The notes under the pieces: model-generated
Told to the model about the DNA's origin: nothing
Databases searched by the model: none
Seen by the model: only the letters and a program-made list of their open reading frames with translations
Translations under genes and position numbers: made by a program
NCBI GenBank assembly: GCA_048013815.1
Contig: CM106586.1
Coordinates: 10,044,001 to 10,107,718, forward strand
From: Setoptus koraiensis
Taxonomy: Eukaryota; Animalia; Arthropoda
Length of the DNA: 63,718 nucleotides
Direction of reading: 5' to 3'
Part shown: positions 7,001 through 48,955 of the stretch, piece by piece
How the letters are laid out: each line of letters starts with the position of its first letter
Numbering within the stretch: position 1 is the first letter of the stretch

Positions 7001-10000
7001 AGCGAGCTGGCCTGTTGGTCGCCCAGCCAAAACTCTGCAAGCGGCACCTGAATGCGACCGGATTGAGCGGTTGGTGGCGGCGGCTGATGTTGCCTGTTGT
7101 TGATGTTGGCCACTGGCTGTGGCAGCCGGCTCTCTAACGGTTTGTTTGCATTCTAAAAATAGCCACCAGGAGATGGATTAAAACAATTGTGTGGAGGAAA
7201 AAATATTCAAGCGTAAGATTATTGTAATTTTCTTGGATGATTGTGTCGGATTGGATTTAGCGGTTTTTGTACAGCGCCCGCTCAAATGAGAAAGTCAAAT
7301 GAGAATGAGTCAGTTGGTGGCAGCGGCGAATGGCGTTCAAGAACGAATCACCAACAACAATCAAATGGGAGAGAGATAATCCATTGCAACTGGCAACAAT
7401 CGAATTGCAAATTGCGATGCGGCTGACCCTGGCCGCCCGTACCGTAGGCATCGTATCGCATGGATGCAAATTTCGCTGACGAGACGCCATTGTTATGCCG
7501 CCTTGCCAAGATATTGTTACGAGATAGATAAGTCACTGTTGTGTTCAATTGATGCTTGCGCGCAACAACACACAATTTTCAAAACAACGATTGACTGATA
7601 AACAATTTGGCTAATTGTCGATTGGGCAAATTTAGCAAAATTGTTTATCAAAATGACTGTCGGGCAGTGATTGAAAGATTGAAATGGCCACAGTGAACAA
7701 TTGTAACAATTTGCCGTTAACTGTTATCCGCCAAACTGTTACCCAGTCGTCATTAGCATTGATCCGCTGCTCGCGATACACACACACGCACACGAATACT
7801 GTATTCGGAATACAGTTTAAAACAGTTTGTAAAACGAATTACATTCAAGGATGGCGGCGTGTGCCGAAACTGGGGGCGATTTTGATCGTTTTAAAATAAT
7901 TTTCGCTTATAATTCAAAACTATTGGGCTAAATCAATACAATTGGCACGCACTGTAGCTAATTAGTTAAATTCGCGCGAGCCGCGCTCATGACACGACAC
8001 GACGACGACGACAGGTATCGACAGGGCAATTATCTGGCTGTCAAATAAATGCTAGAAACAGCCGAGCGGCCCGAAACAGAGGACGAAAAGGCAAAAGGAC
8101 GCCACCCAGTCAGCCAGAAATATCTCTACTGCATCTGATGGTGCGAGCGTCTGACTGTCGAGTTTGTGCCAGGTTTCCTTGTTAGTTAGGCTGGCGAGAG
8201 AATTAGCCCGTTTGAAGCTGTTATTTTTAGCCGTTATTGTGTTCCGCCGCTGTTGGCTGTATGGCGCCGTCGTAACAAGCTAACGAGATATCAGTGGAAC
8301 CTTGGCTTTGATATATGCCTTCGCACACATTGTGAGGGGATACATTGTGAGATTGTAAATTGTATGATTCAATTTGGCTCGGCTCGGCTCGGCTCGCTGG
8401 TTGGCCGGCTAAATAGATGAGTGAAAATAGATTAGTCAAGATTGTAACAAGATAACATCGGCAAGATAGCAGCTGAATTGCAGCCAAACGCTTACAAATA
8501 TGCTGTGCTCGCTGTGTTCCCATGCAACAATGCACAACATACAACAAAATAGAAACAAAAATATGAATCGGCCGCCCTGTTCAATTGTTATTATTTTGTT
8601 ATTTTGTCCCTTGTTACAGATGACCCCAAAAAGGGTACAGTTGTCCATTGTTTCATGTTATTAGCCGCTCGTCTCCCGCATCCAATTATTTAGAAACGGC
8701 CGGCGGAGTGCGCGCCCGACCAGGTTAATTAGCGCCGGTATCACTCCCATCATGCGACTATGATATGACTATGATACGACTATGATATGACTATGATGGG
8801 AGTCCTATGACTCACCAGTGGCCCACTGGCAGTGGGTCAACAAATGAAAACGGCGAGCTTTTATTCTTTTCGAGCGCACACTTTTCAAATTGGATTTTTG
8901 ATACATTTTTGGGCTTCAGACACTTTCGGCTCGAAAGTTTCGAGCCGAAAGTTTAGACTTGCACACACACACACGGATTGACACTGGCTACATGCGTCTC
9001 ATAAATGTTGCTAATGATAGTTATTGCGTTCAGCTCGAACCGATCACCGGCAGCTGCTCATTTCAATGGCTCTGCCAGCCAGAGTCTGGCTGGCCTAATT
9101 AACGCTGTCGCTAATTACTGCCCGCGTTGGGCGACCGTCTGGCTGACTTTTGCGAAACAAAACGTGGGCCGTGACAAATAATCACTTGCAGTGCAAATAA
9201 AGCATAACTGCAATATTGATTATATATCATTATTGATATATAGCCATACTGACATGTAGTGATATCGATATGCAGTGATATTGTTGATATAGCGAGCGAG
9301 CGGTGGCGCCGGTTAATGGCTACTGTTTGAAATAAAGTTGATCAAGACGGTAATTAAAAAATAAAACATTTCGAGAACATAATTTCTGAATGTCAGTTCT
9401 GATGAACTGAACCTCTGATAAACTGAACCTCTGATAAACTGAACCCCTGATAAACTGAACCTCTGATGGGTTTGCCTTTATGTGCCGGCTTGCGCTCGCG
9501 CTGCCGATTTATGTGACCAATCACGGACTCTGACAGTCACAGTGTGACTATCACTTCGACCCTGAAAACGCTTTGCAACCCGTACCTGTCAATGATGGTT
9601 GTCGATGATAGTTGAGCGACTGGCTACCGGCGCTTGAAACAAACAACGTGCCCACGTCAGATATGCAAATATTATCCTGCATGATTAGCGTATCGATTAG
9701 TTAGTCAGTAAGTTAACTGTAAAGTAAGTTTGACTGTGCCCGTGCCCGATCGCACTGTCAGCGAGCAACTGGCACTTGTTAAAATGTGTCCAAGTGACTA
9801 AATATTAATTTTAACTTTTAATAGCTACGCAGGCGCCTCACCTGTAAACACGGCCATTTGTATCCTGTTTAAAAAGGTTGATTGGACACACTTCCGACAC
9901 AAACAACAACATATAACAACATATAACTCTTGTCGAGCTTGCGCCACACAACTTATCATATTGGTAATATCAATGGCTTGCAACAGGGCCGATGTGGCCC

Positions 10001-13000
10001 AATGTGGATGATGAGACGATGATGTGCAGAGAAGTAATAAAATCAAGAGAAAAGGGTTGTCGAGCGCACGCCGGCATAAGTAACAGATCAACCGGTTCGC
10101 GAAGCCCTCGAGCCTTGTAGCCCGAGCCTTGTAGCCCGAGCCTTGTAGCCCGAGCCTTGTAGCCCGAGCCTTGCGCATCGGCCGGCCCAGCTCGAGCCAG
10201 CCAGCACAAGGGGGGTCTCGCCAGCTCGAGCTGGCCTGGTCTGGCCGCCATTTCAGCAATCAGCTGACACAGGTAAGATACAGGTATGATACAGGTGTAT
10301 GCAGGTAAGCTGATGATGGTCGCAGTAGGTTATTGATTGCCCATTAATAGCAGCGGCCATTAATATCGCAACACACTTGTTGCGGCGCTTGCTGGCACAA
10401 TCATTAGCCGCTCACACAATCGCTGACACTGGCACTGGGTATTATTTGGCAATATTAGCCGGCGATGCTCAGTATCATACTGACAGTATGAGCCGGCGAT
10501 GGATGGCGATATTTAAGATGCTATCCGTTAAGTGCTCGCTTTATCCGACCAACGCCGATGAAGAACCCTAGCGACTTTCGATGATATATTGGCGCCAATA
10601 TTTTTGCAGCAAACAATGTGTTGTGCAATGAGATAATTTGAGACATTTGCTTTCAAAACGATGATTTGCTTTCGAAACGACGATTTGCTTTCGAAACGAC
10701 GATTTGCTTTCGAAACGACGATTTGCTTTTGAAACGATGATTTGTGTTCGGTTTTGTTTGAGCCGCGCAAGTTTGTTGAATTGAGTGCAGGGGCACCGGC
10801 TGATACATACTGATAAATGCGAGACAAAATGCACACTGGACATCGGCCGAGAGCCTTCGCACTATGAAGTTCAGAGGGCATTTGCGACTCGCCATGCGCA
10901 TGTCGGCAACATGATGTTGCTGCACGGCGGCAAGTCGGGATGCGGTGCCGAGACCCGCGACGAGGGGCAAATGCGAACCCGAGCGGCCAAATTGAATAAA
11001 TATAAAATTAATTTGAATGGAAATCAATTATCCAGCGACCGTGTTCGTCGGCGTGTGTGTGTGTGTGTGTGTGATCATTTGCGAAAATGCAGACTGCACT
11101 TAATGATGATGATACACAGACACACACACACACTTGGCAATTTTCAATATGAGCGATTATGTAACTGTGATTCTCATGGTACGAGAGCGAGAGTGAGCGC
11201 TCTCGTTGGATTTGCCGAGCGAAACAGGTTGATTACTTGTATCTGTTGGCGCACTGCTGTGGCTGCCGCTGCATAACAATATCACTGCTTCATTCTTCCT
11301 GATAAATCATTCTGAAACTAATTCTTGATACACACACACACACACACACACACAAATATGAAGCGATATAATGATGCGAAAGTTGCTCTCGCTCTCGGTT
11401 CATCATGACGTCTTGCGAGAGTCTTTCTAAAGTCAAATTTATCTCTCTCTCGCTGGCGATTGCGAGCTGATTGCGATTGCATACTTTGTTGCTATTTGCG
11501 CTCATGCCTCAACAAGCACCACTTAGCTGTGTGACGCAACCGCTTTTGCCGTGTCGTCGGCTAATGAATAGCCCCTGTCGAGCTTGCCGGCCGCTCATTT
11601 GGCCAGCGACTGGGCGCCAGTGATGACAAAGATGCTGCTGTCGCCGTTGTTGCTGTTGTTGTTGCTGTTGCTGTTGTTGTTGTTGCTGCCGTTGTTGCTG
11701 TTGTTGTTGCTGCTGCTGCTGTTGTTGTTGTCGGTGTTGCACGACCGTACTCACAAAGCGAAGCAGCGGCGAGTAACGGTCGAGTGAAACGGCCCAAAAG
11801 CGACCCTTTCGACACACACACACACACTGGCCCGTTGCGTCTGCTCAAATTCATGTGTGGATCGGGATGAGTGAGTGGTCAAGATGGACGAATGACGCAA
11901 CTTTGTGACTTTGTGTTCATGCAGCAGCGCACACAAGGACACCAACAAGCTGCGGCAGCGGCTATAATGACTCGGCACAATGATGACCAACGGAGCCGTT
12001 ACAATCAAACGACGACGCGATACGCTATCCTGTTTATGTCCAAAATTAGATATGTATCTCTCATCATTTAAACTCTCTCTCTCTCTCGCTCTCTTTCTAG
12101 ATTTCTATCTCACATCAGGTATCAGCCAGTTACTCACCTGATGTGTCTGATGCCTGATGTGAGCCGGCCACATCGGGCCACTAACATATGATATAATATC
12201 ACTGGTAGTGACCAGTGGTATTATATCACATAACAGTATTCCGCTGGGCACAGCGGCCGGCGACTGCACTAATTAGCTGCAAAAGTTCATTAGACTGACA
12301 TAAAACATGTCAGTGTAATAGATAAAACCGGCTCATGTTGCGACCGAACTGGACACGATCGATAGCAATCGATTCTCACGCGCCCCTCACGACACTTTGG
12401 CTCGCCAACACTGATTTTAACGGCGATTTGTGAATGGGGCTCAACTCACAAGTTGCAACTCACAAATTGCAACTCACAAATTACAAATCACAAGTTAAAA
12501 AGTCACTCACAAATTACAAATCTCAGGCCGGCCTCTCACAGATGAATCATCTGAGATGACGTTGTGGCACTTGTTGCATGTTTTTCAACATACAACAGAA
12601 TGCGGCCGCGAGCTGTCGCTGTCGCCGACAATTGAAACGCAATTGACGGCAACCCAGATACGCATGCATTTGCAACAAAATATTGATCATTACAGCTCAA
12701 TATTTAATTGCAAAATATTTTTGATTAATACAGCTCAATAATTAATTGCAACACAAGATGCAGCCGGCGCCGGTATGTTGGCGTCGTGCGCTAATTAGTG
12801 CGCCCGCTCGCACAGGTGAGCGAGCCGATGTGAGCGAAGCCGCTAATTGACACAGCACTAATTGACAGTGCGCTAACTGGCAGTGCTATGAGCGCTAATT
12901 GACAGTGTAACGGAGAGTATAGCAACAGTTGTGCGCAAGCAGTGTCTGTCAATGCCGGCCATACAAGCCACTGGTCAGCGCACTGGTCAGCACACTGGTC

Positions 13001-16000
13001 AGCCGACGAGCCACCAACTTTGCACTTCCGTCCCCATTTGGCAGCGCCAGTCCTTTTTGCACTGGTTAATGGTGTCAGCAACGGTGAGATACGCAGCCCA
13101 TTACACAGGCAACGAACGGTATCTTGACGGCATCATTTATGTGCCGGCACATAACGGGATTCTCTGCCCAATCGAGACTCTTGCTCCGGCCAGCCGAGAC
13201 TCTCGAATGGGCGGCGGCGGGCCAGACACTGTCATTAGCGACACATAATTAATTAATAATTAAGCTGTGCGGCCGGCGCAGTGGCCAGACCAATAGCGCA
13301 CTGTTGGTCCGGCGGATAGCTGGGCGGCTCTGTTGTGAGTGACCGGCGGTCTGATTGAAACAAGCTGACCAAAACCACGACCCAAGCGACCCGCCACTTG
13401 TCTCCTCTACTGTCCAGCAGGGCAACACAATTGCACAATGTATCCCGTGATGTAACGAGCCAATAATAATAACAACAATTGTTTGCTTGTTTGTTATGCA
13501 AACACTCACACACTTAATAACTCGCTCATATTCGCTCATATTCATTGGCGTGTCGTCGTTGTGATCATTATTACGCAATTATGTAACACACGTTGTAGTG
13601 CCACCAACGAGCCAACACCAACAACATTGTTTGTCATTTTGTGCTGCTGCTGCTGCTGTTGGCGCCACAATGAACCAGAATAGCTGGCCACAACACAGTG
13701 AACAACACGGGACAGGTTGCGTGACCAAATTATGCAAGGCATCGCATGGCGTTGTGCGCAGCCACAACAACAACAAACAATGGACAAACATCATTTGTCA
13801 GTCACTGTCGCTCGCTCTGTCATGTGACACGTCCTCGTCGAGCTTGATGTGGCCGCTGCTGTCGTCGGGCTGCCTCGACATGCTTGTCAGCTCACCTGTT
13901 CATTGTGTTACGCGAGCCGGTCAAAGTTACGTCTAACACCGTTACGTAACAATCGTCGGCGAGCGGCTGGCCAGCAACGGCAAGCGGCCAGCGGACAGCA
14001 ACGGCAAGCGGCCAGCGGACAACATCGCCCTGTTCAAATGTCATCCTTGGCTGACTGGCCAGCCGGCCACACGAGCGCGCGCGATAATGTAACGGTGGCG
14101 CCTCGTGACTGCCCGTTCAAGGTGCAAGCGCGTTGCATTCAATTATGCTCTCAAATTAGTTGCATTGTGTTGCTACAAGTCGGTTGTTGCTGTCAGTTTG
14201 TTGGCGCCGCCAGTGCACACAAACACAACAAACAACGGACAGGTGACATCTGACACTTGTTACACTTTGTTGTGCGCGGCCAACACTGGGCCGCGTGTGC
14301 GTATGATTATGCAAATGGCCAGAGCATGGACTGTTGCTGTTGTTATTGTCGTGAAATTATTAGATATTATTCTCGATTTCGCCACTTTCGCCTGTTCACT
14401 CGCTCGCTGGCTCGCCTGCTCACCGCGCGCATAATACAAAATGTATGCAAAATGCTGTGCTCGCGCGTACAGGCACGACCTGCGACAAACAGTTTACAAA
14501 CAACGACACAAGCAACAGGTTGGTCTGGCCGTGTGACGTAATGCCCGCTGCTGTTGCGCTGCTGCTGCTGCTGCTGCTGTCGTTGTTGTCGTCGTCGCTG
14601 CTGTTGTCAATGACCGAATTGATGGCTGCGAACGCACACCGATTGTCATAGCAGAGTGCTGAAAACAACACATTCCACCATTTGTTGCGCCAGCGCCAGC
14701 AGCGACACAGTGGAATTCGAATTAAAATAATAACAACGCTAAACTGGCGACACAAGCACAAATAAGTGTGATAATATTCACATTCATAATCGTGCCGTCA
14801 CAATGTCGAGCTCTTTGTTTTGTCGGGCTGTGTGGCCGCGAGCGCCGTTACAGAGCTTGCCAACATCTGACCTTGATCCCTGCCAGCCCGCGCGCCCGTC
14901 GGGTGTCGCTGGCTGGCATGTTTACGAGACGAACGTTTTAAAAACAAAATGGTATCGCTCGCACAAATCTGACAGATCTCTCTCTCTCTCTCTCTCTTGC
15001 GATCTGAGAGTAACACTTACGCAAATCGAGTATCAAACAAAACTTTTGTTACGAACCTCGCCACTATCGCAGGTCGCTAGTTGCGCCGCTATCGCACACT
15101 ATCGATGGTCAGCCGACGGCACAAGTTTGAACTGTTTATTTGACGAGATCTGTTCGAGATCCCGTCGTCAACTGTCAAATAAACAGTCATTTGCAACTGA
15201 CTGTATTCCGACACCCGCCTGTCGGATACAGAACGCTTAGGTGGCGCCACCCAGATACGACACACTGCGCATTGGTGCCATAGGCGTGAATGGCAGCGCA
15301 CAGTTGATATTATTTGATTTTTATTGAGCCAATCAATTAATGCAAAGGTGTCGAAATGAGCATGAACCTGACAACTGGCTCGCGAGCTGGCAATCTCTCT
15401 TTTATTTGATCGTCTCGTTGAAATGATAAATGAATTATCTCCGGCTCGCCATCTCAAGCCTATCTCACGGTTAGATCTGTCTCTCAATGATGGCCGCAAT
15501 CGGCCGAGCCAACACTTACTTTTGATTGCTAATATACAGCAATAATAATGTGAGTGATTAGCGGACCGTCGCTCATATTGACCCGTCGGCCCGTTTGTCG
15601 TTAGCGGCCAATGGCAAACTGAAGTGCGCTTGTTGCCATTACACACACACACACACACACAGTAACTAACAATATCTCAGATATCTGGTAATATCTGAGA
15701 TATTGCGCAATTTTTACACTTGCGTGTGTGATATGCACACTTGTTGCGTAATAGGCACACTTGTTGCGTAATTAGAGTGCGCATTGCAACACCCAATCGC
15801 CAGCAACAAAGTGCAGAAGCTCGTTTATCGTCGCTTCATCTCGCTCGCTCGCTCGCTCGCATTACCTGTCCGACGTTGTTTAAATGTTGTTGGTGAATGT
15901 GTTCTATCAACACCTATCGTCTATTCGCAAACAACTGCACACAATGACAACAATGGCGGCCACCAATACGTAACAGCGCACAATATAAACACACATGAAA

Positions 16001-31000: not shown

Positions 31001-34000
31001 TTTACAACAAAGCATCATCATGTAAGGTGATCTCATATAAGGCGATCACATAAGGCACACACACACACACACACACTGATATATAACGCACTGACCAGTG
31101 GTGGTTAATTGTTGTTGCTGTGTGCTACTATTATTGCTGCTGACGCAACTGTTCCAAAACGCGCTGGCGATTGCTTTTCTTTTTGCATTTGCTCATACTT
31201 ATAAACACATGCGTTATGTACGTTATGTGAGCGATCAGTTGAACTCGATAGCAAAAATTGATTGTAATCCATAGCTGGCCAGCGACAAGTGAGCCGGTTT
31301 GCATTATTAGGCAACGGCTCGCGGCGACGGCACTAAGGTCTTGCTAATGGCACTAAGGTCGCACCACCCAAACAGCCCAACGGCCGAGCAGCTGAACGCT
31401 AATCGTGGACAGCGGTATCGCACATCAACACCTAGTCCAGTTTTGGCGACCCTATTGAGCCAACCTTATTAACTCCATCTCGCTCTTCCTACTCGGGCTG
31501 GGTGGGGCGCCCATTCGACTGCTCGCCGACAACGACAACCGGCTGCTCGCCGACGACGACAACCGACTGCTCGCCGACGACGACAACCGACTGCTCGCCG
31601 ACGACAACAACGACGGCGAGAATCAATCATAGTCAGCCGTCGAACTTGAACGTAGTGAGCTCGAGAGGTAATTGCTTTATTATCTCAGTCGCTCATATTT
31701 TCAACGGCTCGATCTCTGACTAATCGAAAAATTATTATTACTATCGGAAAGGCATAAACAAATCTGGCCGGCTTGCATCTCATCCGAACCCAAGGCAGAC
31801 CTACTCTGTGTGTCGTCCCCTGTCTGTCTGTCTCGCTGTCTGTCGGTGCTCGTTTTGTTTCTCGCTGATGATAATTTAATCAGTTCAAATCAATCATTCG
31901 TCGACTGACTTGGTGAGCGACAAATTGGCAGCCAACATTTTTCAAGACTAACTTGTTCTCGGGCGCCAACTTTTCATTCGACGTTCATGCATTCATTGTG
32001 CAATGGAACGCCAATTCATACCGCACTCGAGTGCGATATTTTGATTGTGTTCTTCTAACACCCCGAAATAAGATGTATGGCACACAAAACGAGTCGACTT
32101 CCTATTCCTTGTCGCTTCTTCGCTTCATGTTTCGTCTATGTGTCATGACAATAAATTGTGCCAAACTTTTTGCAATTTGCGACCTTGACCAGCGCCGCTC
32201 TGCGAATATGTCAATGTGTGTGTGAATTATGGCGCTCTGTTATTGTGAATTACAATTGTGTATTATTGTTTTGCGCTTATTAGCCGGACACATGTGCCAA
32301 ATGGGTGCGCTGAATTCAATTGATACTACCGGTTTCGATTGGAGCGTCTGGCATAAATTGACACCTCGCTCAAATCAAGTTTGTTGCTGGTCAGTATGTG
32401 GGCGCCAAACAGCTACAAATGTGATATTATTATAAGGATACAATTGACAGCTTCAAATGTGTTTCCATCCATCAGCTGATCTCAGTTGGTTAGCGCATGG
32501 CGAGCAATACGCTCAAAAAAATTATATTACTTTACTTGGAACGTTTCTAGCAACGACTGACCCACTGACACGGCCGAGATTAGATGAAAATCAACGAGGC
32601 GAATGAAATCAAATTGAAACATCTAAAACGACAGCAACAACAAGCATGTTGTTGGCTCAACATTAGAATAATGCGTTATACGAGAATAATATTTAATATG
32701 AGAATAATGCCAATCCACCTGTCGCTATCTGATAGCGGCTATCGTGTTTAATGAAATCATGTGTTGTTTGCACATTGCATATTTTCTTGCTGTCTTGTTG
32801 TAGCTGTCATATGCGCTTCGCTGTCAAAATCTAAATAGCATCAATATGCTAATCAATACGCTCACAGCCATGCGATTAATATAAGTCACAGGCAATGGGC
32901 ATTGAGATTCTCAATTTGAGAGGGGCATCTTATCGTTGAGATAGGCAGGCAAAACAGGCGATTTCTAGACAGAATTGAAGAATTGCCTTCATAGGAGATA
33001 TCTATTTTATATCTGGGAAAACATTAGCGCCAGCTCACATTTTATATTAATGTGTGCATGTGAGACGAATGATAATATTGCCCACAACAGACCCAAACAC
33101 TGCAGCTAACTGCGGCCAGCTCTCTCTCTTCGGGTCGGAACAACATGGCTCGAATAAGCCACTTTCGAGCTATTCTATTGCCTCATAATGTCCGCCTGCA
33201 CAATAATGTCTTCCGGTTTTTTGCATTACAGCAAACACAACAATAGTTGCGCAATCCATCGGTGAAGTAGTAGGCAAAAATGATGATGATCAATAATGAT
33301 GCAATAGCGAGGCACTCTTATGACACACACACACTATACTAACTAATATATACTAACTATGACTTGTGAGCTGACTATGCCTGGGTTAACTATGAGATCT
33401 CTTTTTTTGGCTTGTTTTTTCTCCCCCCCCCCGCTCACCTGTGTTCACCTGTGCGCTCGGGAGTTGGCATTTTGCTCGGTTAGGCGCACAAAGGTGAGCC
33501 AGGTATGCAGCGCATACTCAAACTTTATCTTTTCACATCTACATCAATACTACAATCGTTCTGGTGTATCGCAGGCTATTCATTGGCCAACACAGACACA
33601 CAGCTACATTGAATGGCGACCTGTTGAACGAATTCCTCAATTGAAATTGATTTGAGCGCTAATTGTTGGCTCGCCGATCAAACCTGGCAGCCCAATGATA
33701 AATACTCAATAAAAAGACTGACCGGTTGTGTGCAGCAACACACACACACAGTCACTCACACTCATAACAAGAAAGAATCTAGATTAAATATCAATAAAAA
33801 CGAAAGCGAGCAACTTGTTGTTAATAAATTGATGCTTAGATTACATTAGCCGAGCGATTAGTTATCTTGTTATTTATCGAATCTAATGAAATAGGATCAG
33901 ATCAAATCGTTTCTTCTGTGTATGGCCAGATCGAAGCGATTTGAATGCAGTCCCGCAACGATTCTTGCCAGTGAGTTGCGAGTAATTCGGGATTGTGATT

Positions 34001-37000
34001 TCGTGCGCTCTAACGAACGTGCTCAGATTAAACAATTTGCAGCCATGAACATGGGTCCGGTATTGCAAGCCACGCCACAGTCTGCTGGCCAGACATAAAG
34101 CATTCTTGATTTTGGCATCAGTGATGTTTGTTTATCAGTTTGTGTCCGTCAAACAATTGTCGCGGCCGCGTTACGACATTATTTGGTCGCTGGTCCAATT
34201 ATTGTGATTCGGTCATAATTTATGAGCCATAAATTATGACCAAATCGATTCGCAACGGCGTTCCGCTGCTGGTGATACGTTTTTTTCAGACTCAATTTAT
34301 TCCACCAAGCTAACTTTATCACGTGATTCACGTGACGCGAAAATGAGGCTGCGGTCGGTCCCACTTTTGCATTGTCATAGCAATAATAATGCATCATGGG
34401 TGAGATCGTTGCCGAGAAAGCGAGAGAGAGAGAGAGAGGCGGACAAAAACAAAGAACTTGTCAGAGTTTGTAACACAAACTTTGTAGTGCCTGTGCGAGC
34501 CCAGCTATAGCCGAAATGAGCAGATGCCGATATTGAAACGTGCTGTTTGCTGTGATTTGGATCGATTTCCAATACAAAACCGCTGATTAATATCCGACCA
34601 GCCGGCCGCATGCCAACTGCATTCCGCTGCTTCCGGTGAGTGATAGATCATCAGATTAGACACTAACTAACTAACGGGTTGGCATTAAATTGGCTTTGAT
34701 TAGCAGCACAACAATAGTGTTATGTATGTATGTTATGTAGTATACAAGTTATGACATGCTTATTATAGCAGCCTAAGCTGGCCGTCACAACAATGGTGAC
34801 CAGCCAGTCTGCCGTCTAGACAAAGCCAGCCATTGGTTTACCGCATTGATTGCCATTGAACACACATTGAAGAACATACAATATGCATTATACATACAAT
34901 AGCCGGCTGAATAGACAGGCAGACTTACATAACATTACAGGTAGGCAGCAGCAGCAGCATTTACAAATTGTTGCTGATTGTATAATATCATTGGCGCCTA
35001 AGTTTCTTCTTCGATTGTTGCTCGGCTAATTTGATGGCCAATTGATTTCAATTGATTTCAATTGATCTCAACTGATTGATTTTATTGCCATACACACTAG
35101 CATCTTCTCTCTGGCGACTACATACAGACGCTTGGCTGCATTGGCCATAAAGCAGCGGATCAGCGCATCCGGGTTGCGGGCATTACGACAAACAAACAAT
35201 GGTCGCCGGCTTACAATCAATAGACAAATTTGTTGGCCTTCTTGCTCTCTTTACTATTCGGGCATTAGGCAAATTTGTTCAACATGCGCCGCCGAACGAT
35301 GCACAAAAATAGGGAAGAGGCCCATTGACACTGTTATAAATTTTGTGTGTTGTTGTTGTTGTTGGCCCAACTGAATAATACTGCCCTTATATGTGCGCGT
35401 CATGGTATCATGAGATGACGCAATACTAACCACTAATTTAGTGTCCACCAACGATACAATACAACCTGCATACACAATATTGCTGTCATATCAATCTGTT
35501 GAGTTCAAGAGTAGCCTCGTCCGCCGCTAGAGTAACATAAGTAGCCGCCACCATGGTCAATTGTTGCATCCACAAAGCTTTGTGCGCGCATTTCCTATTT
35601 CTCACCGTCTAACCAGCTCGCTAACCAGCCGGCGAAGCGGTGAATGGCCCGCTAGCGAAATAAAAATGAATTGATTTAAACGTGCAGTCTTGCATCTTTC
35701 TTTGTTACAATCACACACACTCACAGTGTTGTAATATGCATACAACGGCCACAATTGCCCACAGCCGCAAGTGCCAACCATGCTTTGATTTTACTTTATG
35801 TATTAGAATAGATACACGCCAACAAAAGAATCCCATCCTAAGAAACTGTGCCCGTTCGACCAGGCGCTGCCGGTATATATTCATATATGCATATCGCTGG
35901 CTAAACGGCCATCGCCAAATTCCAACAAAATCATCCGACAAACCAATAGACCAATAGAAGCAAGATCTATCTATCTGCTGGTGTGATTCTGCCGGCTCGA
36001 GGGTGACTAATCTAAGCAGCATGCCCCCGTTGGCCGTTCTGGCGCTTCTTTTTCTCGCCACTGCTCGTTGTCGCTACCGCTACTGCCGCGGCAAGTAGCA
36101 CCTAGTGTAAATGAATGCACGCCGGAGCACCGCAACTTTGACGACAACATTAGATGGCGAGACCACTTGTTGGCCGACTTGTGAGACTTGTGTGTCTAGA
36201 CTTGCGGTAACAGCGTCATGATCATGAATGGAAAACCAGAGAACGCTCATCGATTCCCATCGAGTTGAAAACATGAAACATACGAATGGAATCGGCAGGA
36301 ATTAGAATACGATGTTATCATCATCATCATCGTTCTAAATTGCGCCGGCGCAATTGTACACAATAATTGTTGCAATATGCTGCGCTAGTCAGATGTGTTC
36401 TGGCCAACATTTCGGCTTCGCTCCAACTGAACATTTTGTCCCCTTTCGGTTCGTCTCGTCTAGCTTCTTTTCTTTTCGTCTCGTTTCTATTCTTTGCGTC
36501 TCGTTTCGTTTCGCTGCATTGACCGGCCGCTGAATGGTAGCCAATGCGACTGTCCGTGCCTGTACTAAACAGCTAATGTAATTACTGAAATTCCAATTCA
36601 AATGAATTGGAGTCAGACGAACTGGAGAATAATACACACAAAATTGTGTATAACACATGTACACATATAAGATGCGGCCATTCAGTGTTGCTCGCTCATA
36701 GCGATCAACTTCAAATCAGAATACAATCAATTGGTGCCAGGAAAAGCCTCAAATGAGTGCCATGGGATAGGAGGCCAATGGAGAATAGCCTCTCAGGCTT
36801 AACTCGTCATGAATAGACAGATAGATAATAATGGTAGCTTATGGTCAGTTGGCAAGCGGCTATCACCAGTCAGCTGGACGGGATACATCAACGTGTACTG
36901 TATTTCATTTTCAAACATTTGCTCGACCTACTGACGGTGTTGTGGGCCACAGTTCATAGAATGGATTGGATTTCGTATGACGAGTATTTCAAGTGCCGAG

Positions 37001-38994: not shown

Positions 38995-39093
38995 TTTGTG
39001 CACTATTTGTGCACTGTCTGTGCACCGCTTGTGCAACGTTTGTGCACCGTTTGTGCAACGTTTGTGCGCCGTTTGTGCAACGTTTGTGCAACG
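38995..39093. repeat. 11-bp minisatellite x~9
   Basis: TTTGTGCAACG / TTTGTGCACCG units. Confidence 0.9.
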
Positions 39094-41037
39094 GACGGCG
39101 TCTTGGCGACGCCTCCTTCCCCTTCCTCCAGATGGGCGGCGCATGCGCCCTAGGGCGAGCGATGCAACACACAGCGACCGAAAGCGGACGGCGGCGGCGG
39201 CGGCGAGACAGGCGGGCAAAGTGCGGCAAGGATTGCAGAAAGTTTGCGCCAGTTGCAAGTTGCGCCAGTGTTGGCGAGCTTGTGCAAGCCAAGCCACAGC
39301 GACATCTGTTGGCGAGCGGCCACCAGTGGCGGGCGCCAAACGGTAGCCGGGGTAACGAGCAACAAGTTGCAGTTGCAGCTACAAGTTTTTCACTACTGTG
39401 GCCTACAATTACTCTTTATTTACAAGCGAAAAACTTGTAAATAGAGCAACTTTCACCGTTGCTCTCTCACCTACTGCCAGCAGTTTGCTACTGGCCACAC
39501 GAAACAAACGAGGCGCCATTGGAATGGTCGAGTGCATAAATCCGGTCCGATGTGCGTCCAATCGATTTGTTGTTGCAATAGCGCTGATGACGTTGAGAGC
39601 ATCTCATAATAACGAGCGACTCATGCGTTGTGCGTCTGGCCAATAATTTCATTACTGCCATAATGGCCTCTATTACAGATGGCGTAATTGCCGGACAATG
39701 GTGCCGCTGTGCAGGCTGTGTGGCGCGCACAGGCAAACCGTTGGCCAGTGCCGATAATTAATCAGCTGGAATCGTAACGGAAATGGGAAAGCGAGGCACA
39801 GTCGGCTGCGAATCAAATCTGTGCGACTGGATACGCAAATTTGTTGCGTTGCTGGCCCTCGCTTCTGTGCTGGCGCCAATGCGATACTGCCAACTCGATA
39901 CTGCCAACTCGATAGTATCAACTCGATAGTATCAACTTGATACTATCAAGTTGATATCGCTGCTAATACAGGCTGCATAATGGCGTACAATGGCATGTAA
40001 TGCCAGCGCCAAGCTACCTGTGCTGAGCGATGCCAACAGGTTGCCAACGAGCGACAGCCAGACATGCTGGCAACGGCGCCCGTTGCTGCACAAATGTGTC
40101 ATTGCGTCTTGTTATTGTTTCAGCGAGCTCGTTTCGGCAAGCCACCGGCACCGGCCAGCGAGCGGCCGAGCCGGTGGCCATGTGGCGGAAACAGTCATTG
40201 TTGCGTAATGCGATGCTGGTGGTTCGCCCGCTCTCGCCGAGCGAGCGGCTCTCGCCGAACGAGCGGCTCTCGCCGAACGGACGGCTCGCGAGAGCGAATG
40301 CCAACGAGGGCCGGCGCAGACGAAATGATTGATTTCGGCTTGGCAGTGCGACGGACAAAAATAGAGGGAGTGCAAACGACGAGCATATCTGCTCACAATG
40401 GCCCGCGATACTGGCTCACAATGGCCGGCGATATCTGCTCGTCACAACGGTCGGCTCGGCGATAATGTTATGTAATGTTATACAATATTGATCATGCTCA
40501 TTGGGTCGGCCGCAATGCCGGCTGCCGATGGTGGCCCGAGCGGCGACGCCGCCACAACAATGCAGGCACAACTGTAATCGGTCATTGCACTTGAGGGACT
40601 GGCGGCCGGCCAGCCCGGTGGCCGGCAATTCTGGCGGCCACCGGCCAACAGGTAGCGAGGGTGTAATTTGGGCGAGTTCTTACAGTGTCGGCAAACTTGA
40701 ATGTTTGCACACAAATTCAATCATCTGGTGAGAGTCATTAGTTTGCTAATGGCAGCCATAATGCAATAATGCATAATGGGCACTCATTATTTCGTATCGC
40801 CTCGCTGTGTCGCGCTCGCCGTGTCGCGCTCGCTTGTCTGGCGCTCGCTTCGCTGGCGCCGATGAAACCAAATGCGCACCAATATTGAGTCGAATATTGA
40901 TTTTGTTGATATTGCGCGATATTAAATGATCGCGCAACCTTCATCGCCGATTAACAGCCGAGTGCATCGATCGCACAGAGACACTTGTTGCGCTCGCAGC
41001 GCCGAGCTCTGACAGACGGCCAAACAAGCCGCACGCA

Positions 41038-41114
41038 CAATTGGTTAGTCACAATTTGCGTCCGCGCAATTGGTTAGTCACAATTTGCGTCCGCGCAATT
41101 GGTTAGTCACAATT
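41038..41114. repeat. 29-bp tandem repeat x2.7
   Basis: CAATTGGTTAGTCACAATTTGCGTCCGCG. Confidence 0.95.
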
Positions 41115-43523
41115 GAGCGAGAGCGCAAATCAAGTAAACAAACGGGTTTAAATAAACAACGAGCCGAGAACAATAAATCATGTGTCAATTAGTGCTCGCT
41201 CTCGTGTCGCTGTTGTCGCTGCTGTCATGTTGTTAGGGCGATCGCTCGAAGCAACAACAATGACAACGACACCGGCTACAATTATCGCGCCGTTGTCAGC
41301 TCGTCGTGGCCATCACGACCAACTGGCCCGCTGTGTGCGCGCGCGACCGCCCCTTGACACGTTTACGATTGCTACTCCACTTTGTTTGCCCAGTGCCCAT
41401 GCAAGGCTCGCTTGCGCGGCCCGCCGCCGGCAGTCGAGTCAATAATTCGTCTGATTACATTGCGACTCATTGCGCATATTGCGTCTATCGCGCATATCGC
41501 GCATGTCGCGCATGAATCGCGTATGTCGCGTATGTCGCGTATGACGGCGCTAAATTATTAATTATTCCAATGCGAGCACGCAATTGGAATAAACTGGACT
41601 GAGCGCGCTGCACGTACCGCCAAACGTGCTGCCGTGAGTGACAAACTGGCTGGTGGTCGCGCGCGCCTCTCACCTGGAGTCGCATTCTTGTTCGGTGTCC
41701 CATTCGCAATTGTCAATGACACTCGCTCGTTGTGTGACAAGCGCTCATTGTGCCAACACACATATGCAAATATGAGCAGTCATATTTCAATTTGCATGCG
41801 AGTTGCAGCGCCAAAACAATGGCCCAACAAGCGGCCACAACGACGAGCGGGCGGACAAGACAATCTAATTGACAGTTCTCGACATCGAGCGTCTGATTGA
41901 CGTCTTGCTCACAAGTTGTGAGTCACAAGTTGCGACTCGCAACTTGCGAGTGAGACCGCGCAACTTGCGAGTGAGACCGCGCAACGGCCCACAATTGCGT
42001 CTGTGTCCATTTGCGACGCTCGCGACACTTGCGACAGCTGACGGGCGTCGCAGCCCCGTCTGGCTCGCTCAACTTGAGCGGCTCGAGCAAGTTCGATCGC
42101 CTTGGCATAACTCGCGAGTGACAAAACTTTTGTCACAAAAGCACAAAAATGATAATGCCAAACCGTTGCTGGCTTGCGCGGCGCCATGTGGCGGTTGGTG
42201 GTTGCTGTTGTCGTTGTTGGTTGTGCGACAAGAAACAAAGGATGTTGCGCTGGCTGGCTGTTGTGAGTCACATGGCCAACGAGTGCCGCGCACTCTCGAA
42301 TTTGTCAAGCTCGCCGAGGCCGACGCAGCTAGACACTTGTTGCGGCAACGGGCCGTTGTTGGCGACAAGAGTCGCTCGACAAGCTTGTGCGGCGTGCGCC
42401 TATGCCAGTCTGGGCCAACCTGCCAAATCGATAACGGTCGACGATGAATCGGCGTCATGTGCTGGCCCGACGACCCGCCAGACGGGCCACATAATTCCAT
42501 ACTGTTCGACCGGGACGCCGAGATCATTTTTCGTTTTTTGTCACCGATCCAGCCAAAATGAGCGCTCGTTTTGGCCGCTCATCTCGATCGCTCACAGTCT
42601 GCGAGTCACAGTCTGCGAGTCACAGGCGACGAAACTTGTCGGTTTAGTCGCTTATGAGTGGCTGCAAATCGAGCCCAATTGCGAATGGTGGTCGCGCACA
42701 AGCCGGCAAGCGTCGCCAACGATGCTCTCGGCGCGCCCGGAACAGGGAAATGGCAAATTGGCGCTCATCTGCGGGTCGCACGCTCACGCAGCGCCCATCG
42801 AGCGCCTACCTGGCCACTGTGAGCGCCTACCCGGCAACCCGATAGTATCGACTCGACAGTATCGACTCGATAGTATCGAGCGACTGACGAGCAACAGGCG
42901 AGCGCTGCAACGAGTGCCCAGGTATCGGCATTAGGCTTGCTGTTGCCCGTTGTGTTACTTCCTCGCGAAATTTCGCCCGCTGAGTCGCCGATCGCGGCCT
43001 CTGTGTGCAAAGGAATAATACGATACATCCAATTGTGTGTTCCATGCGATTCGATGGCGGTCCCACTGGCAAGCGATTGGCTGTTTGGCGCCTGCCCATG
43101 CTAAACGCGCCAAATAATGACATACCTGGCGACAGTAATCGCCTGTCCCACGTTCAGCGTCTTGGCACACGTCGTCGTCGCAAGTGCCGGCGAATGTCGG
43201 CAAGTGCCGGCGAATGTCGGCAAATATCGGCGAATATTATCGAATATTGGCGAGCACTGGCGAGCATTGGCGAATATCGGAAAATATCGGCGAGTATCGG
43301 CAAATATCCGCGAGTATCCGCCAACGCGAACTCGTCACAAATTGGCCACTCTCACACACTGGGCCGAACGGCACTGGCGTGCCGGGCCTGGCCAGCGAAA
43401 GTGTGTCATTATCAGCGTCATGCCCGCAGCGCCGCCACTCGGGCCGGCCGCGACAACAGGTGCCAGGCTTGCCGGTTGTTGCGTCCGCGCCGTTCGTTAC
43501 CTGTGCTTTGTTGTGCGCGCTTC

Positions 43524-43573
43524 CTCTTGCCAGCTCTTGCCAGCTCTTGCCAGCTCTTGCCAGCTCTAGCCAG
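43524..43573. repeat. 10-bp minisatellite x5
   Basis: CTCTTGCCAG units. Confidence 0.95.
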
Positions 43574-44098
43574 TTGGCCATACCCGACCAACTAGTAAGT
43601 TAACTGGCAAGCTAACCGGCGAGTCAACTGGTGAGCTACTGTGGGGCGCCCCATACCTCTCATTATGAGAGTCTCGTGCGCTGTGTGGCTCACTGTGGAC
43701 GCACACTGATCGGACGGGGCTCGCACGGTTGCGTGGCTCGCCGTAGGTCGCGCAAAAAACAAAATGAAAAAATAAAGATCTACGTTCGTAACAATGAGAC
43801 GCAATGTGAACTTCATTAGCCCGATTGGTGGTTGCAGTGTGCCGGCGATGGTCGGCCGTCATTGTCAAGTTGTCGCTGGCAAGCAGGATGTTGCCGTTGT
43901 CCGCTTGACATTGCAGTCGGCCTGTCACATGGCTCGCTGCTGAACATGTCGCTATTGAATATTTCGGCGCCTGTCGCTTGCCGTCGGTCGATTTGAATCA
44001 ACTGACAGCTGCCGACAATTGTCTTGGCTGGCATCTCAAATTGGCTAATTAATTTCCATCTGCAGTGAGTTATGACTCGTTGGCCAGCGGCCATCGAC

Positions 44099-44182
44099 AG
44101 AATGGCCGCTGACAAGAGCCGCGAGAATGGCCGCTGACAAGAGTCGCGAGAGCGGCCGCTGAGAAGAGTCGCGAGAGCGGCC
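44099..44182. repeat. 25-bp minisatellite x3.4
   Basis: AGAATGGCCGCTGACAAGAGYCGCG-like units. Confidence 0.9.
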
Positions 44183-46220
44183 AGAGCAAGTGGCCAGAAT
44201 GGCGAAAGCGAGCTCGCGAGACACGGCGAGCGCTTTGTGTGTGCCCACTTCCTTGTGTCAGATATCTGGCTTATCAGAATTGGTCCACTTATTGTTGTCA
44301 TACTGAGCCGCCGCATTTGTTACTCGCCAGCTAACGAGCGCTCTCACGATGCGGCGCTGACGACGGCGCTGATAACGGCCCGCCGGCCACCTTGCCAGCG
44401 CCGCCATCATTGAGATGCTAATTATGAGAACTAAGCGACGCGCTGACACGATCATAATGGCAATTAAATGTTGCGGCATTATATCAAATCCGGAGGGGGC
44501 TTAATGAGAATCGGCTACAATGCGCCTGTCCGTTCTCTTTGTTTCTCGGCTGTCCAATGCATGTCGGTCCCACGCCGGCCCATGCCCGCATCTCTCGGTC
44601 GACCAGCAGCCAGCAGCCACCAGCGGCCACCGGCAGTCCGGCCGGCATCGCATAACCGCAAATTACATCATATTAGGTCGTAGCACATCGTAGCGTCACT
44701 CACAGACTGTGAGTCACAGTGCAGGGTCTCTGAATGTGAGACTCTCAGATGGACAGATCGCATCGCGGGACGGGGTTAGCGGCGTGCGACAGCGTCGCGC
44801 TCTTGTTGCGTTGTTGGTGCGTTAGATAACAATATTGTTTGTTGTACTCGCTGTTGTGCTCTCTCTGTCCGGCCGACCGGACAGGGAGAGCGCAGACAGC
44901 AGAGAGACGGGCTAGCGGACCGGAGGGCCGGCCGATGAGGCGGGCTGATCTTGAATATTGCGCAACGCTGGCCAGACGGCAGCATTTTGCCGTTCGTCAG
45001 TGTGCCCGCAACGCGAACTGGCCAATGCGAGCCGGCAGACGAGCCAGCCCGACAGTAACTGTCCGCTCGCAGGCCACTTCTGGTCGGCGCTGGCCGCTGG
45101 TCGGCGCTGGCCGTTAGTGGGCTTCGGCCCGCTGTCAGCCCACACTCTTGTGGCCGGCTAAACGGCGTTGTGACTAAACGGAAAGCTCTTGTCGCCCAAT
45201 TACTCTCACTTCTACATTGTGTATTGTCTCGCTGATGATGCAAACGCACTAACGTATTGCGTAATACGTGAGCGTGGCGAATGGTTTGTTGAATGCAAAG
45301 TAACGTTAAATGCTGAAAGTTAAATGTTGGACGTTAAATGTGCGCTGAAGCCGATGCCAGCACAACAATGACATGTCAAGAAATATCGCATCCTGCCGCA
45401 TGGAATCGTATCGAATCGCATCACACACTCTTACACTGTGTAAGTTGCACACTCTGGCACACTCTGACACTCTATGACACTCTATGACACTCTATGACAC
45501 TGTCACCGGTCGGTGTGTGTTCGGTGTTCGGTGTTCGTATTCCAACAGTGTGTGTGTCGCTGACGCAACACACACCTGTTATGATATGGAAGAGAAATCA
45601 TGCGCTAACACACCGACTGACTGACTCACAAACTGGTCTGCACTATAGCGAGTCGATGATATCAACTATAGGTCACGCGAACGCTCGGCTTCCTTGATCG
45701 GCTGTTGGGACATTGCCGCTGCAACTGCCGGCTCACACACAGTTATCATTTATGTTGATACAAACACTTGCCAATCGGTCTGGTGCGCCGTTCACAATGT
45801 GCCTAGCTAGACACACAAAAACAATAACAACCGACTCACTGTCATTCGAAATCAATTTGCTCGTCCTCTTCCTCTTGCTCCTCATCACTGCCACTCACCT
45901 ATGCTACAGTATCACCGTAGCAGTATGTTACCTGAGACTGTTGCGCAACTGGCGTTGTTTGTCGCCGCCCTAACGGTGCGCACCGTTATGCATCTAAACA
46001 CTAAACTAAATTGCCGCCACCGTGATACACTGGCGTCGGTCACGACGATGCTCGCTTGACACATTTGCATGTATTTAGCGCGGCCACTCGAGCACTGTTG
46101 TTTATACGTTGAGCCATGACAGTACAAACAAATCACTCATTTGTTTATATTGTCTCAATGGTCACCGCGGCTCTATTACTCGCAAGCTGCCAGTCACCGG
46201 TGCCCGTCGCACTCTGGTCA

Positions 46221-46320
46221 CCACACTGTGATCACCACACTGTGATCGCCACACTGTGATCGCCACACTGTGATCACCACACTGTGATCGCCACACTGTG
46301 ATCGCCACACTGTGATCGCC
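46221..46320. repeat. 14-bp minisatellite x7 flanked by a 10-bp direct repeat
   Basis: CCACACTGTGATCR units; ACTCTGGTCA at 46211-46220 and 46323-46332. Confidence 0.95.
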
Positions 46321-48955
46321 AGACTCTGGTCATCGCAGTGCGATGGTCGCACCGCGATGGTCAGAGATTAAATGAAAGCAGCACCACAAACACATGACAT
46401 AACAACAACAATATGTGGCCAATGGGCATTTGTTTCTCATTCAACTGTTCCAACAAACAAACGAGAGCGTGTGTGAGCCAGTTGGTTTGTTGCTGGCGCA
46501 GTGATGCTGCCCAAGTCAGACACTCAACTAAACTTAGCGGCACCGACAACCGACCAGCGCGCCATGCCTCAACTGAACAAAACATTATTTGGAATAATTG
46601 CAAAACCAGATTGATGCTCATGCCAAACTGACTTATGTAATCAATGACACTGGCACTCACTTTATTACAACAAAGACGAGTTTCTTCTGTCGAGTTTCGC
46701 ATCGCATCTTCTTCTCGACTCAAGATTCTCGAGGCTGCGCTGTAGACATGTGTGCTGAGGCATCGCTTTGCGGCCCAGAAAAAACGCCAGCCAGCGAGCC
46801 AGCCAAACAGCCAGCCAGCCAGCCAGCCAGCCGGCCGGCAAGACAGACAAGCAAGCAATCGTGATGACGTAATCATCTATTGTGATGATTAAGAGCACAC
46901 TAACACAAGAGGCGGCCAGCAACCAACGACACTGACAACAATGAGGAATCACGATAGTAAATCAATACGTTACATGCATAACAATAAATTGTTCACTTTC
47001 ATTGTTGTTGATCGTTGTTCTCGTCGTCGCATTTCGTACGCACCGTCGCCCTAAGATATAACTAACCAAACATACATAACCAGACACATATAACCAAACA
47101 TATACAAGCGAGTGCATACAACTAAGCGCTCATTAGAGACACTCGAACAGGCCGAGTAACGGACCCATTTTGTCTCATTTTGTTGGTATTAAAGCGCAAT
47201 TTGTTCCCTTGTCTCGCTTAATTTCTACAGGTGAGTTTTTTTCTCTCGCTCTCTCTCTCTCTCTCTCTCTGCCTGGCAGTGTTGTGAATGGATCATGATG
47301 ATACATACAGCGCAATCAGTAAAAATAGGTGCTCCTCGTAGTTAGCATGACTAAATGAAAACCATGACTATTGATGACTGGCCAGCTCACTATGGCGCTG
47401 CACAGATGCGACTAGTCGTATCGCGTTTATACTGACATGATAGAGAGGAATCTCTCTCTCTGTCTCGTTGGATCGGATAGGACCGATCCGACGAGCCGTG
47501 CATGTATGTTTGCAGGGTCTGGGCCTGGGCTTGCAAAATAGTCGATAAACAACAACAACAAACAAATTCAAAGATTCTGTTAGTGACGCAACAAGGCAAC
47601 TTTATTTACTATTTATTTATAGATAAAACGATGACAAGTGCGCTCACAGTATTACAGTACGACGACCAACACGACCACTGACAACACAACTAATGTGAGC
47701 TATGGACCTAACAAATGGTTGTTACAGACGCTGTTGCCACTTGCTGCAGAGTAAGCAGCAGAATGGGCAAAATGGCTGGGCAAGCAGAATGGGCAGAATA
47801 GACCTTATAAAATAAATAACAACAGCAACCTGTGGAGTTGTTGGTCAGCACACAACTGGCACAACTTCCCATTCAAATGTGACCAGACCACTCACACAGA
47901 CACTGTACACATACTCAACTGCCATGAAGATGCACATCAAGATCATGATTGTTACAATCGTAATCAAACCGCGCCGATAGCTTGCCCATCGAGTGACCAG
48001 TGGTCATTCACGACAGCTAGATGAGTGTGTGTGTGTGTTGCCTATCGAACTTACATTGGATATAGACATAAAATAGCCGTGCATGTATTCAGATACGATC
48101 CACGATCACATTTAAATGTTGGCTTTTCATTAGCTGTATATTTCAGATTGAAGTTGCTCTCGCTCATCCGCACACTCTACGTCCCCATCTTTTATTATTT
48201 TTCATGATACTATTAATCATTGATATGACAGACAACATTTTCTCGCATATCCAATGCTTAATTTGGCCCCGAATTTTGCTCAATATTTGTCAATCAAATA
48301 TATAGCCGTCATCGAGAGGCTTATCAAAAGTGCACACCATCAATGTCCAGTTAGTAGCTTTGTCTTGATAGCTTGGCACATAAAATGTCACTTTGAATAT
48401 ATTAAATATCCGTGTGCAAATGAGATGTCACCCACTTTTGAAAGAGACGTCTTTGCGACACAAAAGTGATTCCCACTCTTTCGTCATCGGTATCGCCACG
48501 TCCGGAACAATAAGCTGATTGGAAAATATACCACCCTGCTCTGTGTGTCACAACTGGCTCCCCCTTTCTCGGGCCACAGTTCGGCTTTTAGGGGACCCAT
48601 CGCCGTGTAGCAAAAATGTTCCTCAAGATCATGAGATCCCCTTCGGCCCAATGAGTTAAATGAAACTTATGACATGGCTGTGTATATTTTATGTGAGTTG
48701 TTTGTTAATATTGACAGCAAATCATCACAATGACATGAACTCGGCACATTGCCATTGTTGTCATCTCGTAACAATGATGTAAATCTTTATTTATTACCGC
48801 TATTCTCTATTCGATTATTAACAGCGATGACACCGAACGATAAACGCATCGCTCAGCTTGATAGTTGATAGATTTTAGTTTATTGGTATCATCGTAAGCG
48901 GGCTGCTGCCAAAATATCGCCGGCCAATATGTAACCAATGGATACCTGTGTTCAT

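Follow-up and report, generated by a model that had tools for sequence, protein, structure and literature searches.

A zone poor in open reading frames holds an excess of short palindromes

The stretch analysed here, called the window, is a 63.7-kb piece of the genome of the mite Setoptus koraiensis, and the subject is a class of short perfect palindromes that combine into a 22-nt unit, which we read, with somewhat better than even confidence, as excision scars of hAT-type cut-and-paste transposons. The window corresponds to C2:10044001-10107718 of a 48.76-Mb assembly in two chromosomes (24.22 and 24.53 Mb); the published S. koraiensis assembly has two chromosomes and an N50 of 24.53 Mb (PMC11920263). 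The GC content of the window is 47% and the CpG observed/expected ratio is about 1. Coding frames of length were found at 1-7 kb and 49-63 kb, with few long frames between them, and the arthropod-type genes were those for a GPN-loop GTPase, a peritrophin-type chitin-binding protein, a nuclear receptor, a septin and a family-30 glycosidase; APC1 is also in the window, as a single 1,928-codon frame. A human or vertebrate origin was rejected on the basis of these genes and the CpG ratio. The following zone lies between the coding flanks (no strand is assigned to this or to the other features listed):

7200-48900: zone poor in open reading frames (ORFs), containing 36 of the 40 palindromes described below

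GC in this zone is 45-56%, against 38-42% in the flanking coding DNA, a relation opposite to the usual one. Of the 19 ORFs in the zone with 150 aa or more, 13 were scanned against Pfam, and none of these 13 had a domain. Open-frame content was rejected as a proxy for coding, since long spurious frames occur in GC-rich non-coding DNA. The genome in which this zone of about 40 kb lies is very compact and intron-poor; the zone may be one giant intron or a regulatory desert.

An exhaustive scan for perfect inverted repeats with arms of at least 7 nt and a 1-nt spacer found 40 in the window, and the same scan gave 12 at spacer 0, 10 at spacer 2 and 18-24 at spacers 3-7. All 22 palindromes that a preliminary description had picked by eye were among the 40, with only trivial shifts of coordinate (10476 became 10475 and 41936 became 41935, both with arm 8). 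In the zone at 7.2-48.9 kb, 36 were observed, compared with simulated means of 3.4-5.4 (sd about 2, maximum 12 in 60 runs) in Markov simulations of orders 1, 2, 3 and 5, so that the excess reported earlier is real, its expectation of 2-3 having been slightly low. The central triplet was AGT or ACT (A-S-T) in 18 of the 40 (45%) and in 17 of the 36 in the zone, where 9.4% of all x-N-x' triplets are of this kind. The bias towards A-S-T, first seen in 14 of 22 palindromes, was thus diluted by the exhaustive scan and not lost, and the five palindromes with arms of at least 10 were A-S-T without exception, as had been stated. Both the count and the bias held under k-mer-preserving control, the count exceeding Markov orders 1-5. 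For spacer 1 in the zone, the numbers of palindromes with arms of 4, 5, 6, 7, 8, 9 and at least 10 were 175, 61, 24, 24, 5, 2 and 5; the decay is not smooth and has a spike at exactly 7, seen at spacer 1 only. The same structures were present in an additional 200 kb drawn evenly from both chromosomes (263,718 bases together with the window), indicating that the feature is genome-wide and not local.

Palindromes are paired at a 7-nt step and form a 22-mer

Nine overlapping palindrome pairs were found in the window, each with centres 7 nt apart. As counted in the 263,718 bases (1-nt hinge, arms of at least 6), 31 pairs had a centre distance of 7, and each other distance from 1 to 20 had 0-2. The unit formed by such a pair is the 22-mer t1..t7 / t8' / t7'..t2' / t1' / t2..t8, in which the prime denotes the complement, or, in other notation, a X b X' a' X b' with X of length 6. 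It can be described as an 8-mer split by a 14-nt insert that combines the reverse complement of this 8-mer with part of a direct copy of it. Segments one and three repeat each other directly, which implies a duplicated 8-mer.

Two palindromes with 7-nt arms at distance d define 14 pairing constraints, and the violations of these constraints were counted at each site. At d=7, 18, 26 and 24 sites had 0, 1 and 2 violations in the 263,718 bases, as opposed to 0-1, 0-2 and 3-17 sites at d = 5, 6, 8, 9, 10 or 11; by our own arithmetic, about 0.02 perfect d=7 pairs were expected by chance. Low-complexity filters were used in the pair, spacer and constraint counts. The window contained 9 perfect and 15 one-violation 22-mers, some of them chained, and the 200-kb sample contained 9 perfect ones and 20 with at most one violation. 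Among arm-7 palindromes without a partner, 15 of 36 agreed with the third segment predicted for them in 5-6 of 7 positions, compared with 2 of 36 in a shifted control.

In the 18 perfect sites, each of the two hinge bases was complementary to an outer base of the duplicated 8-mer, and in imperfect sites the hinge was often one transition away from the expected complement. Centres complementary to the outer bases of the 8-mer indicate reflection. Tandem duplication of a palindrome was rejected, as it would give non-complementary hinges. The sites in the window are as follows.

1737-1758: perfect 22-mer, centres 1744 and 1751, inferred 8-mer TGTTCACA, 0 of 14 constraints violated; beyond the range of the preliminary description
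4281-4302: perfect 22-mer, centres 4288 and 4295, inferred 8-mer GTTGCATG
7793-7816: perfect 22-mer, centres 7800 and 7807, second arm 9
8815-8836: perfect 22-mer, centres 8822 and 8829
8922-8952: perfect palindrome of 31 bp with an arm of 15, centred on 8937 (AGT); near-centres 8930 and 8944
9070-9094: arm-10 palindrome at 9074-9094, centre 9084, AGT, within a one-violation 22-mer at 9070-9091
9528-9549: one-violation 22-mer, centres 9535 and 9542
10469-10491: perfect 22-mer, centres 10476 and 10483
10899-10920: one-violation 22-mer, centres 10906 and 10913
12539-12560: one-violation 22-mer, centres 12546 and 12553
32723-32744: one-violation 22-mer, centres 32730 and 32737
32901-32922: one-violation 22-mer, centres 32908 and 32915
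34319-34341: arm-8 palindrome at 34319-34335 within a one-violation 22-mer
39922-39957: four-centre array in 7-nt steps (39929 G, 39936 C, 39943 C, 39950 G), including the arm-11 and arm-13 palindromes
41908-41950: five-centre array in 7-nt steps, centres 41915-41943, including the palindromes at 41908, 41926 and 41935
42066-42087: one-violation 22-mer, centres 42073 and 42080
42118-42141: perfect 22-mer, centres 42127 and 42134, first arm 9
42859-42880: one-violation 22-mer, centres 42866 and 42873
44698-44720: perfect 22-mer, centres 44706 and 44713, first arm 8
45430-45451: one-violation 22-mer, centres 45437 and 45444
46331-46352: one-violation 22-mer, centres 46338 and 46345

Three to five centres at 7-nt steps were observed at 39922-39957, 41908-41950 and 8923-8951. 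The first and third centres of the array at 39922-39957 are complementary to each other, as are the second and fourth, and the array at 41908 is a near-reflection about 41929. The palindrome at 8922-8952, with its three centres 7 nt apart, is read as a nested, repeated event.

Tandem repeats were also observed next to two of these arrays. A repeat with a 14-bp period starts at about 39888 and merges into the four-centre array (39888-39960), and its successive units differ by multi-base steps that make perfect palindromes. Directly after the five-centre array, a 21-bp tandem duplication at 41941-41985 takes in part of the array and is therefore younger than it.

The palindromes share a motif of the transposon target type

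When palindromes with arms of at least 7 were aligned on their centres, C was found at position -7 (47%), T at -6 (50%), a pyrimidine at -5 (G 7%), a purine at -2 (C 10%), A at -1 (51%) and G or C at the centre (64%). The arms had been described as unrelated in sequence, which is true at first sight, but position by position they carry a common degenerate motif anchored on the centre. This motif was present in the arm = 7, paired, unpaired and arm of at least 8 sets, and the arm-4 controls were flat. Spacers other than 1 were without it, except spacer 3, where the motif was shifted by one position, as expected from mutation of the innermost pair.

In the 44 sites with at most one violation, the inferred 8-mer with its flanks reads SA-CTYNNRAG-TS (hyphens mark the limits of the 8-mer), a palindromic motif that reaches 2 bp past the 8-mer on each side. 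The counts out of 44 were 26 for t1=C, 26 for t2=T (59%), 34 for t3=Y (77%), 34 for t6=R (77%), 21 for t7=A (48%) and 22 for t8=G, with p-values from 3e-3 to 2e-7, and the flanks were S-A and T-S. The central TA of NTYTARAN was not enriched in these 44 sites. The A-S-T centre follows from the motif, with t7=A (or the complement of t2=T) standing around the complemented t8 or t1. The apparent sequence bias of the centres therefore fits a transposon target preference and not a property of a repair polymerase.

Perfect inverted repeats with arms of at least 7 were also more frequent in general, at 3-4 times the Markov expectation for each spacer from 0 to 7 (window and L003-L022). This excess at all spacers was without a positional motif, in contrast to the d=7 class.

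Excision of hAT-type transposons would account for the 22-mers

Elements of the hAT superfamily use an 8-bp target, which is nTnnnnAn for Hermes (PMC10368747), NTCTAGAN / NTYTARAN for human hAT elements (PMC2836564) and GTNCGNAC for hobo (PMC3276498), and transposon target sites carry a palindromic motif that is centred on the duplication and reaches past it (PMC3276498). During hAT excision the flanks form hairpins with a one-base offset (PMC2921059). The footprints of Ac/Ds contain palindromic insertions centred on the complement of the element-adjoining base, with microhomology often used and with arms of up to 20 nt in yeast (PMC5873905).

The 22-mers agree with these features. They contain a palindromic addition with a 1-nt hinge, centred on the complement of the base that would have adjoined an element, and a duplication of 8 bp, to which the exclusive centre spacing of 7 corresponds. 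Their motif is palindromic, extends past the duplication and coincides with nTnnnnAn / NTYTARAN at T2, Y3, R6 and A7. Elements of the hAT type are present in the same genome, at low copy number. On balance, these results suggest that the 22-mers are probably excision scars of hAT-type transposons.

According to this reading, insertion would first duplicate an 8-bp target t1..t8, with a preference for SA-CTYNNRAG-TS. The excising transposase would then nick one nucleotide into the flank, and each flank would be sealed as a hairpin whose tip is the complement of the base formerly adjoining the element. Opening of the hairpins at least 8 nt from the tip would leave t1..t7 t8' t7'..t1' at the left end and t8'..t2' t1' t2..t8 at the right end. 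Finally, the 8-nt reverse-complemented target shared by both ends would anneal, and microhomology-mediated joining would produce the 22-mer wherever the nicks fell; polymerase-theta-type joining may be what fuses the two opened hairpins. Such a model accounts for the single-base spacer, the 7-nt arms, the centre spacing of 7 nt and the A-S-T triplet. The hairpin chemistry and the centring on the complement are taken from the literature, and the structure, its exclusivity, the motif and the hAT genes come from the present analysis; the microhomology joining, the repeated hits on scars and the polarity of change are parts of the model that we infer.

Longer single palindromes could arise from hairpins joined without microhomology, or from a second hit on the target regenerated in the middle of a scar, and the multi-centre arrays from repeated hits. 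A second insertion and excision at the mid-scar target would give four centres t8', t1, t8, t1' and arms of about 14. The centres G, C, C and G observed at 39929-39950 agree with this prediction, and a second hit would also lead to the long A-S-T palindromes (arms 11, 13 and 15).

One low-copy family of hAT-like termini, beginning TAGAGATGGCAATGG, was found in the genome, with about 18 termini (for example L024:236 and, on the minus strand, L025:1911). These termini adjoin decayed hAT transposase remnants, and a 226-bp internal-deletion derivative of the family lies at C2:8096708-8096933. For the hAT gene at L023/L029, convincing terminal repeats were not found, and this gene may be domesticated.

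Several observations weigh against hAT excision. The hAT dimerisation domain PF05699 had only 7 matches in the genome, of which 4 lay in open frames 631-926 aa long, and the number of scars with at most one mismatch, about 5,000 genome-wide when extrapolated from the 200 kb, far exceeds the resident hAT copies. The 16 usable flanks of the TAGAGATGGCAATGG family, a small and old sample of the single hAT-like family with a definable terminus, had T at t2 in 44%, A at t7 in 31% and no C1/G8. No filled site (an element between 8-bp duplications) was found in about 305 kb under strict and relaxed terminal-repeat criteria; the matches obtained there were rejected as palindromic artefacts of larger inverted repeats. 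Classical short hAT footprints, with two target copies and flipped central bases, numbered 8 against about 12 expected. Arrays with 3-5 centres require repeated hits on one 8-mer. Support for the polarity of the change, insertion as opposed to deletion, comes from a single internal comparison, at L019, where a 10-bp tandem unit with an intact 8-mer adjoins two 24-bp units bearing the 14-bp insert. In addition, Mutator-like element (MULE) transposases, which also excise through flank hairpins, coexist in the genome.

It is possible that a handful of mobile, low-copy hAT elements supplied the scar load. Assuming steady birth and neutral decay, the roughly flat series of sites with 0, 1 and 2 violations puts the rate, as a rough estimate, at one scar for every 1,000 or so point substitutions. 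A wider proposal, that the scars record genome-wide removal of transposons, either (a) as purged hAT-type insertions or (b) as programmed, partly somatic excision, is improbable on present evidence.

Alternative explanations

The first alternative is transposon-independent fold-back repair, in which an inverted copy of the flank is made time after time at ordinary breaks, whether by polymerase-theta snap-back, by synthesis-dependent microhomology-mediated end joining (SD-MMEJ) or by template switching during replication. The 3-4-fold excess of short inverted repeats at all spacers speaks for it, the multi-centre arrays appear iterative, and the repair genes also agree with it. The Ku70/Ku80 core domain PF02735 was not detected genome-wide by a method whose control gave a signal; a search for Ku_N (PF03731) was blank, yet its control was likewise silent, and it carries no weight. 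A family-A DNA polymerase was strongly matched (323 bits, a 745-aa frame at C1:19995096), and DRMBL, the domain of the SNM1/Artemis family, was represented by one gene in the genome. In the spider mite Tetranychus urticae theta-mediated joining predominates, end joining in eggs being driven by polymerase theta; loss of ligase IV had no visible consequence there, and no Artemis was detected (PMC13571142). The streamlined S. koraiensis may no longer have classical end joining, and its repair gene content fits excision scars joined by microhomology as well.

The structure of the 22-mers, however, is not that of snap-back products, which have a loop of about 3 nt or more and variable offset and length, whereas the observed hinge, of 1 nt, leaves no room for a loop within one strand, and the step is fixed at 7. 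Snap-back makes no flanking direct duplication of an 8-mer and predicts no palindromic motif anchored 7 nt from the hinge. Iterated snap-back would be expected to give identical centres 2 and 4, and both scorable arrays have complementary ones. We therefore consider fold-back repair at ordinary breaks rather unlikely as the source of this class. The preliminary description had offered both a fold-back polymerase and hairpin-intermediate, P-nucleotide-like repair; reflections about a single hinge base agree with the hairpin kind, and a fold-back polymerase acting at breaks anywhere would predict neither the fixed arm and step of 7 nor the 8-mer duplication, the 1-nt hinge and the anchored motif.

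The same mechanism could also have been carried out by another hairpin-forming superfamily, either MULEs with 8-bp duplications or an undescribed family. The MULE transposase domain had 12 matches in the genome, six of them in uninterrupted frames of 512-548 aa (examples at C2:5349920, C2:764467, C2:21377374 and C2:2749219), and an active Mutator-like family may be present. MULE excision passes through flank hairpins (PMC5499845), and the motif was not seen in the 16 usable flanks of the one definable resident hAT family. MULE duplications, on the other hand, are typically 9-10 bp, or 8-9 bp for Muta1 (PMC5499845), and a MULE-type 9-bp duplication was represented by 0 pairs at d=8 (1-nt hinge) and at most one non-repetitive pair at d=9 (0-nt hinge). 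Apart from that case, the 9-bp blunt-hairpin signature was seen only in low-complexity DNA and was rejected. It is for hAT elements that a 1-nt offset and an nTYnnRAn target have been documented. Another superfamily is thus an unlikely source.

Functional sites under selection, such as binding sites of dimeric proteins, insulator clusters or small hairpin RNAs, were a third alternative. The palindromes cluster in a GC-rich non-coding zone and some overlap CGATA-type motifs. Yet it is the complementarity of the arms that is conserved and not their sequence; transcription-factor sites were rejected because half-sites are not conserved. The third direct segment and the 7-nt arrays have no binding-site logic, and the 18/26/24 series, in which about 16 of the 24 lie above background, looks neutral. 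The palindromes had no match in Rfam. Selection for function is very improbable.

Chance, low complexity, ascertainment bias or an assembly artefact can hardly be the cause, for although the palindromes were first picked by eye and the assembly was built from PacBio continuous long reads of pooled mites (PMC11920263), an exhaustive scan was compared with Markov models up to order 5, low-complexity filters were applied, the signal is exclusive to d=7, the motif is sequence-specific, and sequencing errors do not make 14-bp reflections anchored on a target motif.

Comparison with known systems

The closest known products are the footprints of Ac/Ds, Tam3, hobo and Hermes, which share with the 22-mers the complement-centred, P-nucleotide-like palindromic additions, the 8-bp duplication, the nTnnnnAn / NTYTARAN target and the use of microhomology. 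The mite sites differ from them in having a single dominant product, target(1-7) followed by the reverse-complemented target and target(2-8). They would also form a fossil record across a natural genome, estimated at several thousand copies, whereas hAT footprints were recorded at a reporter locus. Furthermore, the usual short hAT footprints are not enriched in the mite, and the donor element is not seen in place.

The P nucleotides of V(D)J recombination (RAG/Transib) resemble the 22-mers in the transposase-type flank hairpin, its off-centre opening and the palindromic addition. RAG/Transib hairpins differ in lacking the 1-nt offset, which gives even palindromes, and their additions are 1-4 nt long; Transib has a 5-bp duplication. 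These features do not fit the 7-nt step and odd hinge of the mite.

Insertions made by polymerase theta, in theta-mediated end joining (TMEJ) and SD-MMEJ snap-back, likewise contain inverted copies of the flank at repaired breaks, and the microhomology joining of these pathways is probably the final step in the formation of the mite scars. Unlike the 22-mers, they vary in template position, length and loop, and they come with neither a target motif nor a duplication fixed at 8 bp. Quasi-palindrome correction and short template switches also create or perfect short inverted repeats in non-coding DNA, but with any spacer and any arm length; they may stand behind the general inverted-repeat background and not the d=7 class. 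The hairpin chemistry itself is known; the literature searched contained no report of a uniform 22-bp product or of its genome-wide occurrence as a fossil record in a streamlined mite.

Significance of hAT-type excision scars

If the 22-mers are hAT-type excision scars, two 1-nt-hinge palindromes with centres 7 nt apart would be a signature by which past hAT excisions can be counted and dated in any genome, even once the elements are lost. The scars would provide an in vivo read-out of germline break repair in a seemingly Ku-less animal, by a route of distal hairpin opening followed by joining on an 8-nt microhomology. Excision, and not insertion alone, would then add sequence to a streamlined genome, with a 14-bp insert per event, and would seed perfect palindromes and alternating inverted arrays. 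The A-S-T centre bias would be explained without new polymerase behaviour, and the genome may retain a readable record of transposon traffic and of break repair in this mite.

The two forms of the improbable wider proposal would have further meaning. Under form (a), an apparently Ku-less lineage would have purged thousands of hAT-type insertions by excision, and every event would have left a palindromic insert of 14 bp in a deterministic way. New hits would be drawn to the restored target, now more palindromic, and scars would grow into inverted arrays with a 7-nt period, which would amount to a self-reinforcing origin of non-coding DNA and palindromes from nothing. Under form (b), the hAT transposase would be domesticated, and an assembly of whole bodies would show the junctions and not the germline elements.

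Other repeats in the sampled loci

About 4.5 tandem copies of a 24-bp unit (approximately GCGCTAAGATCGCAATTGACGCGC) were found at L018:481-590, roughly 60 bp from two adjacent 22-mers. A repeat of about 257 bp at L025:267-522 (C1:1338685-1338940) is present in more than 50 copies genome-wide at 72-92% identity, with sharp common ends and no terminal inverted repeats; it was tried as a hAT element and rejected as SINE-like (short interspersed nuclear element). At L029:471-1087 (C2:24451347-24451963), nested near-perfect inverted repeats were observed, in which arms of 183 nt with 97% identity and a 16-nt spacer are flanked by arms of 100 nt with 96% identity.

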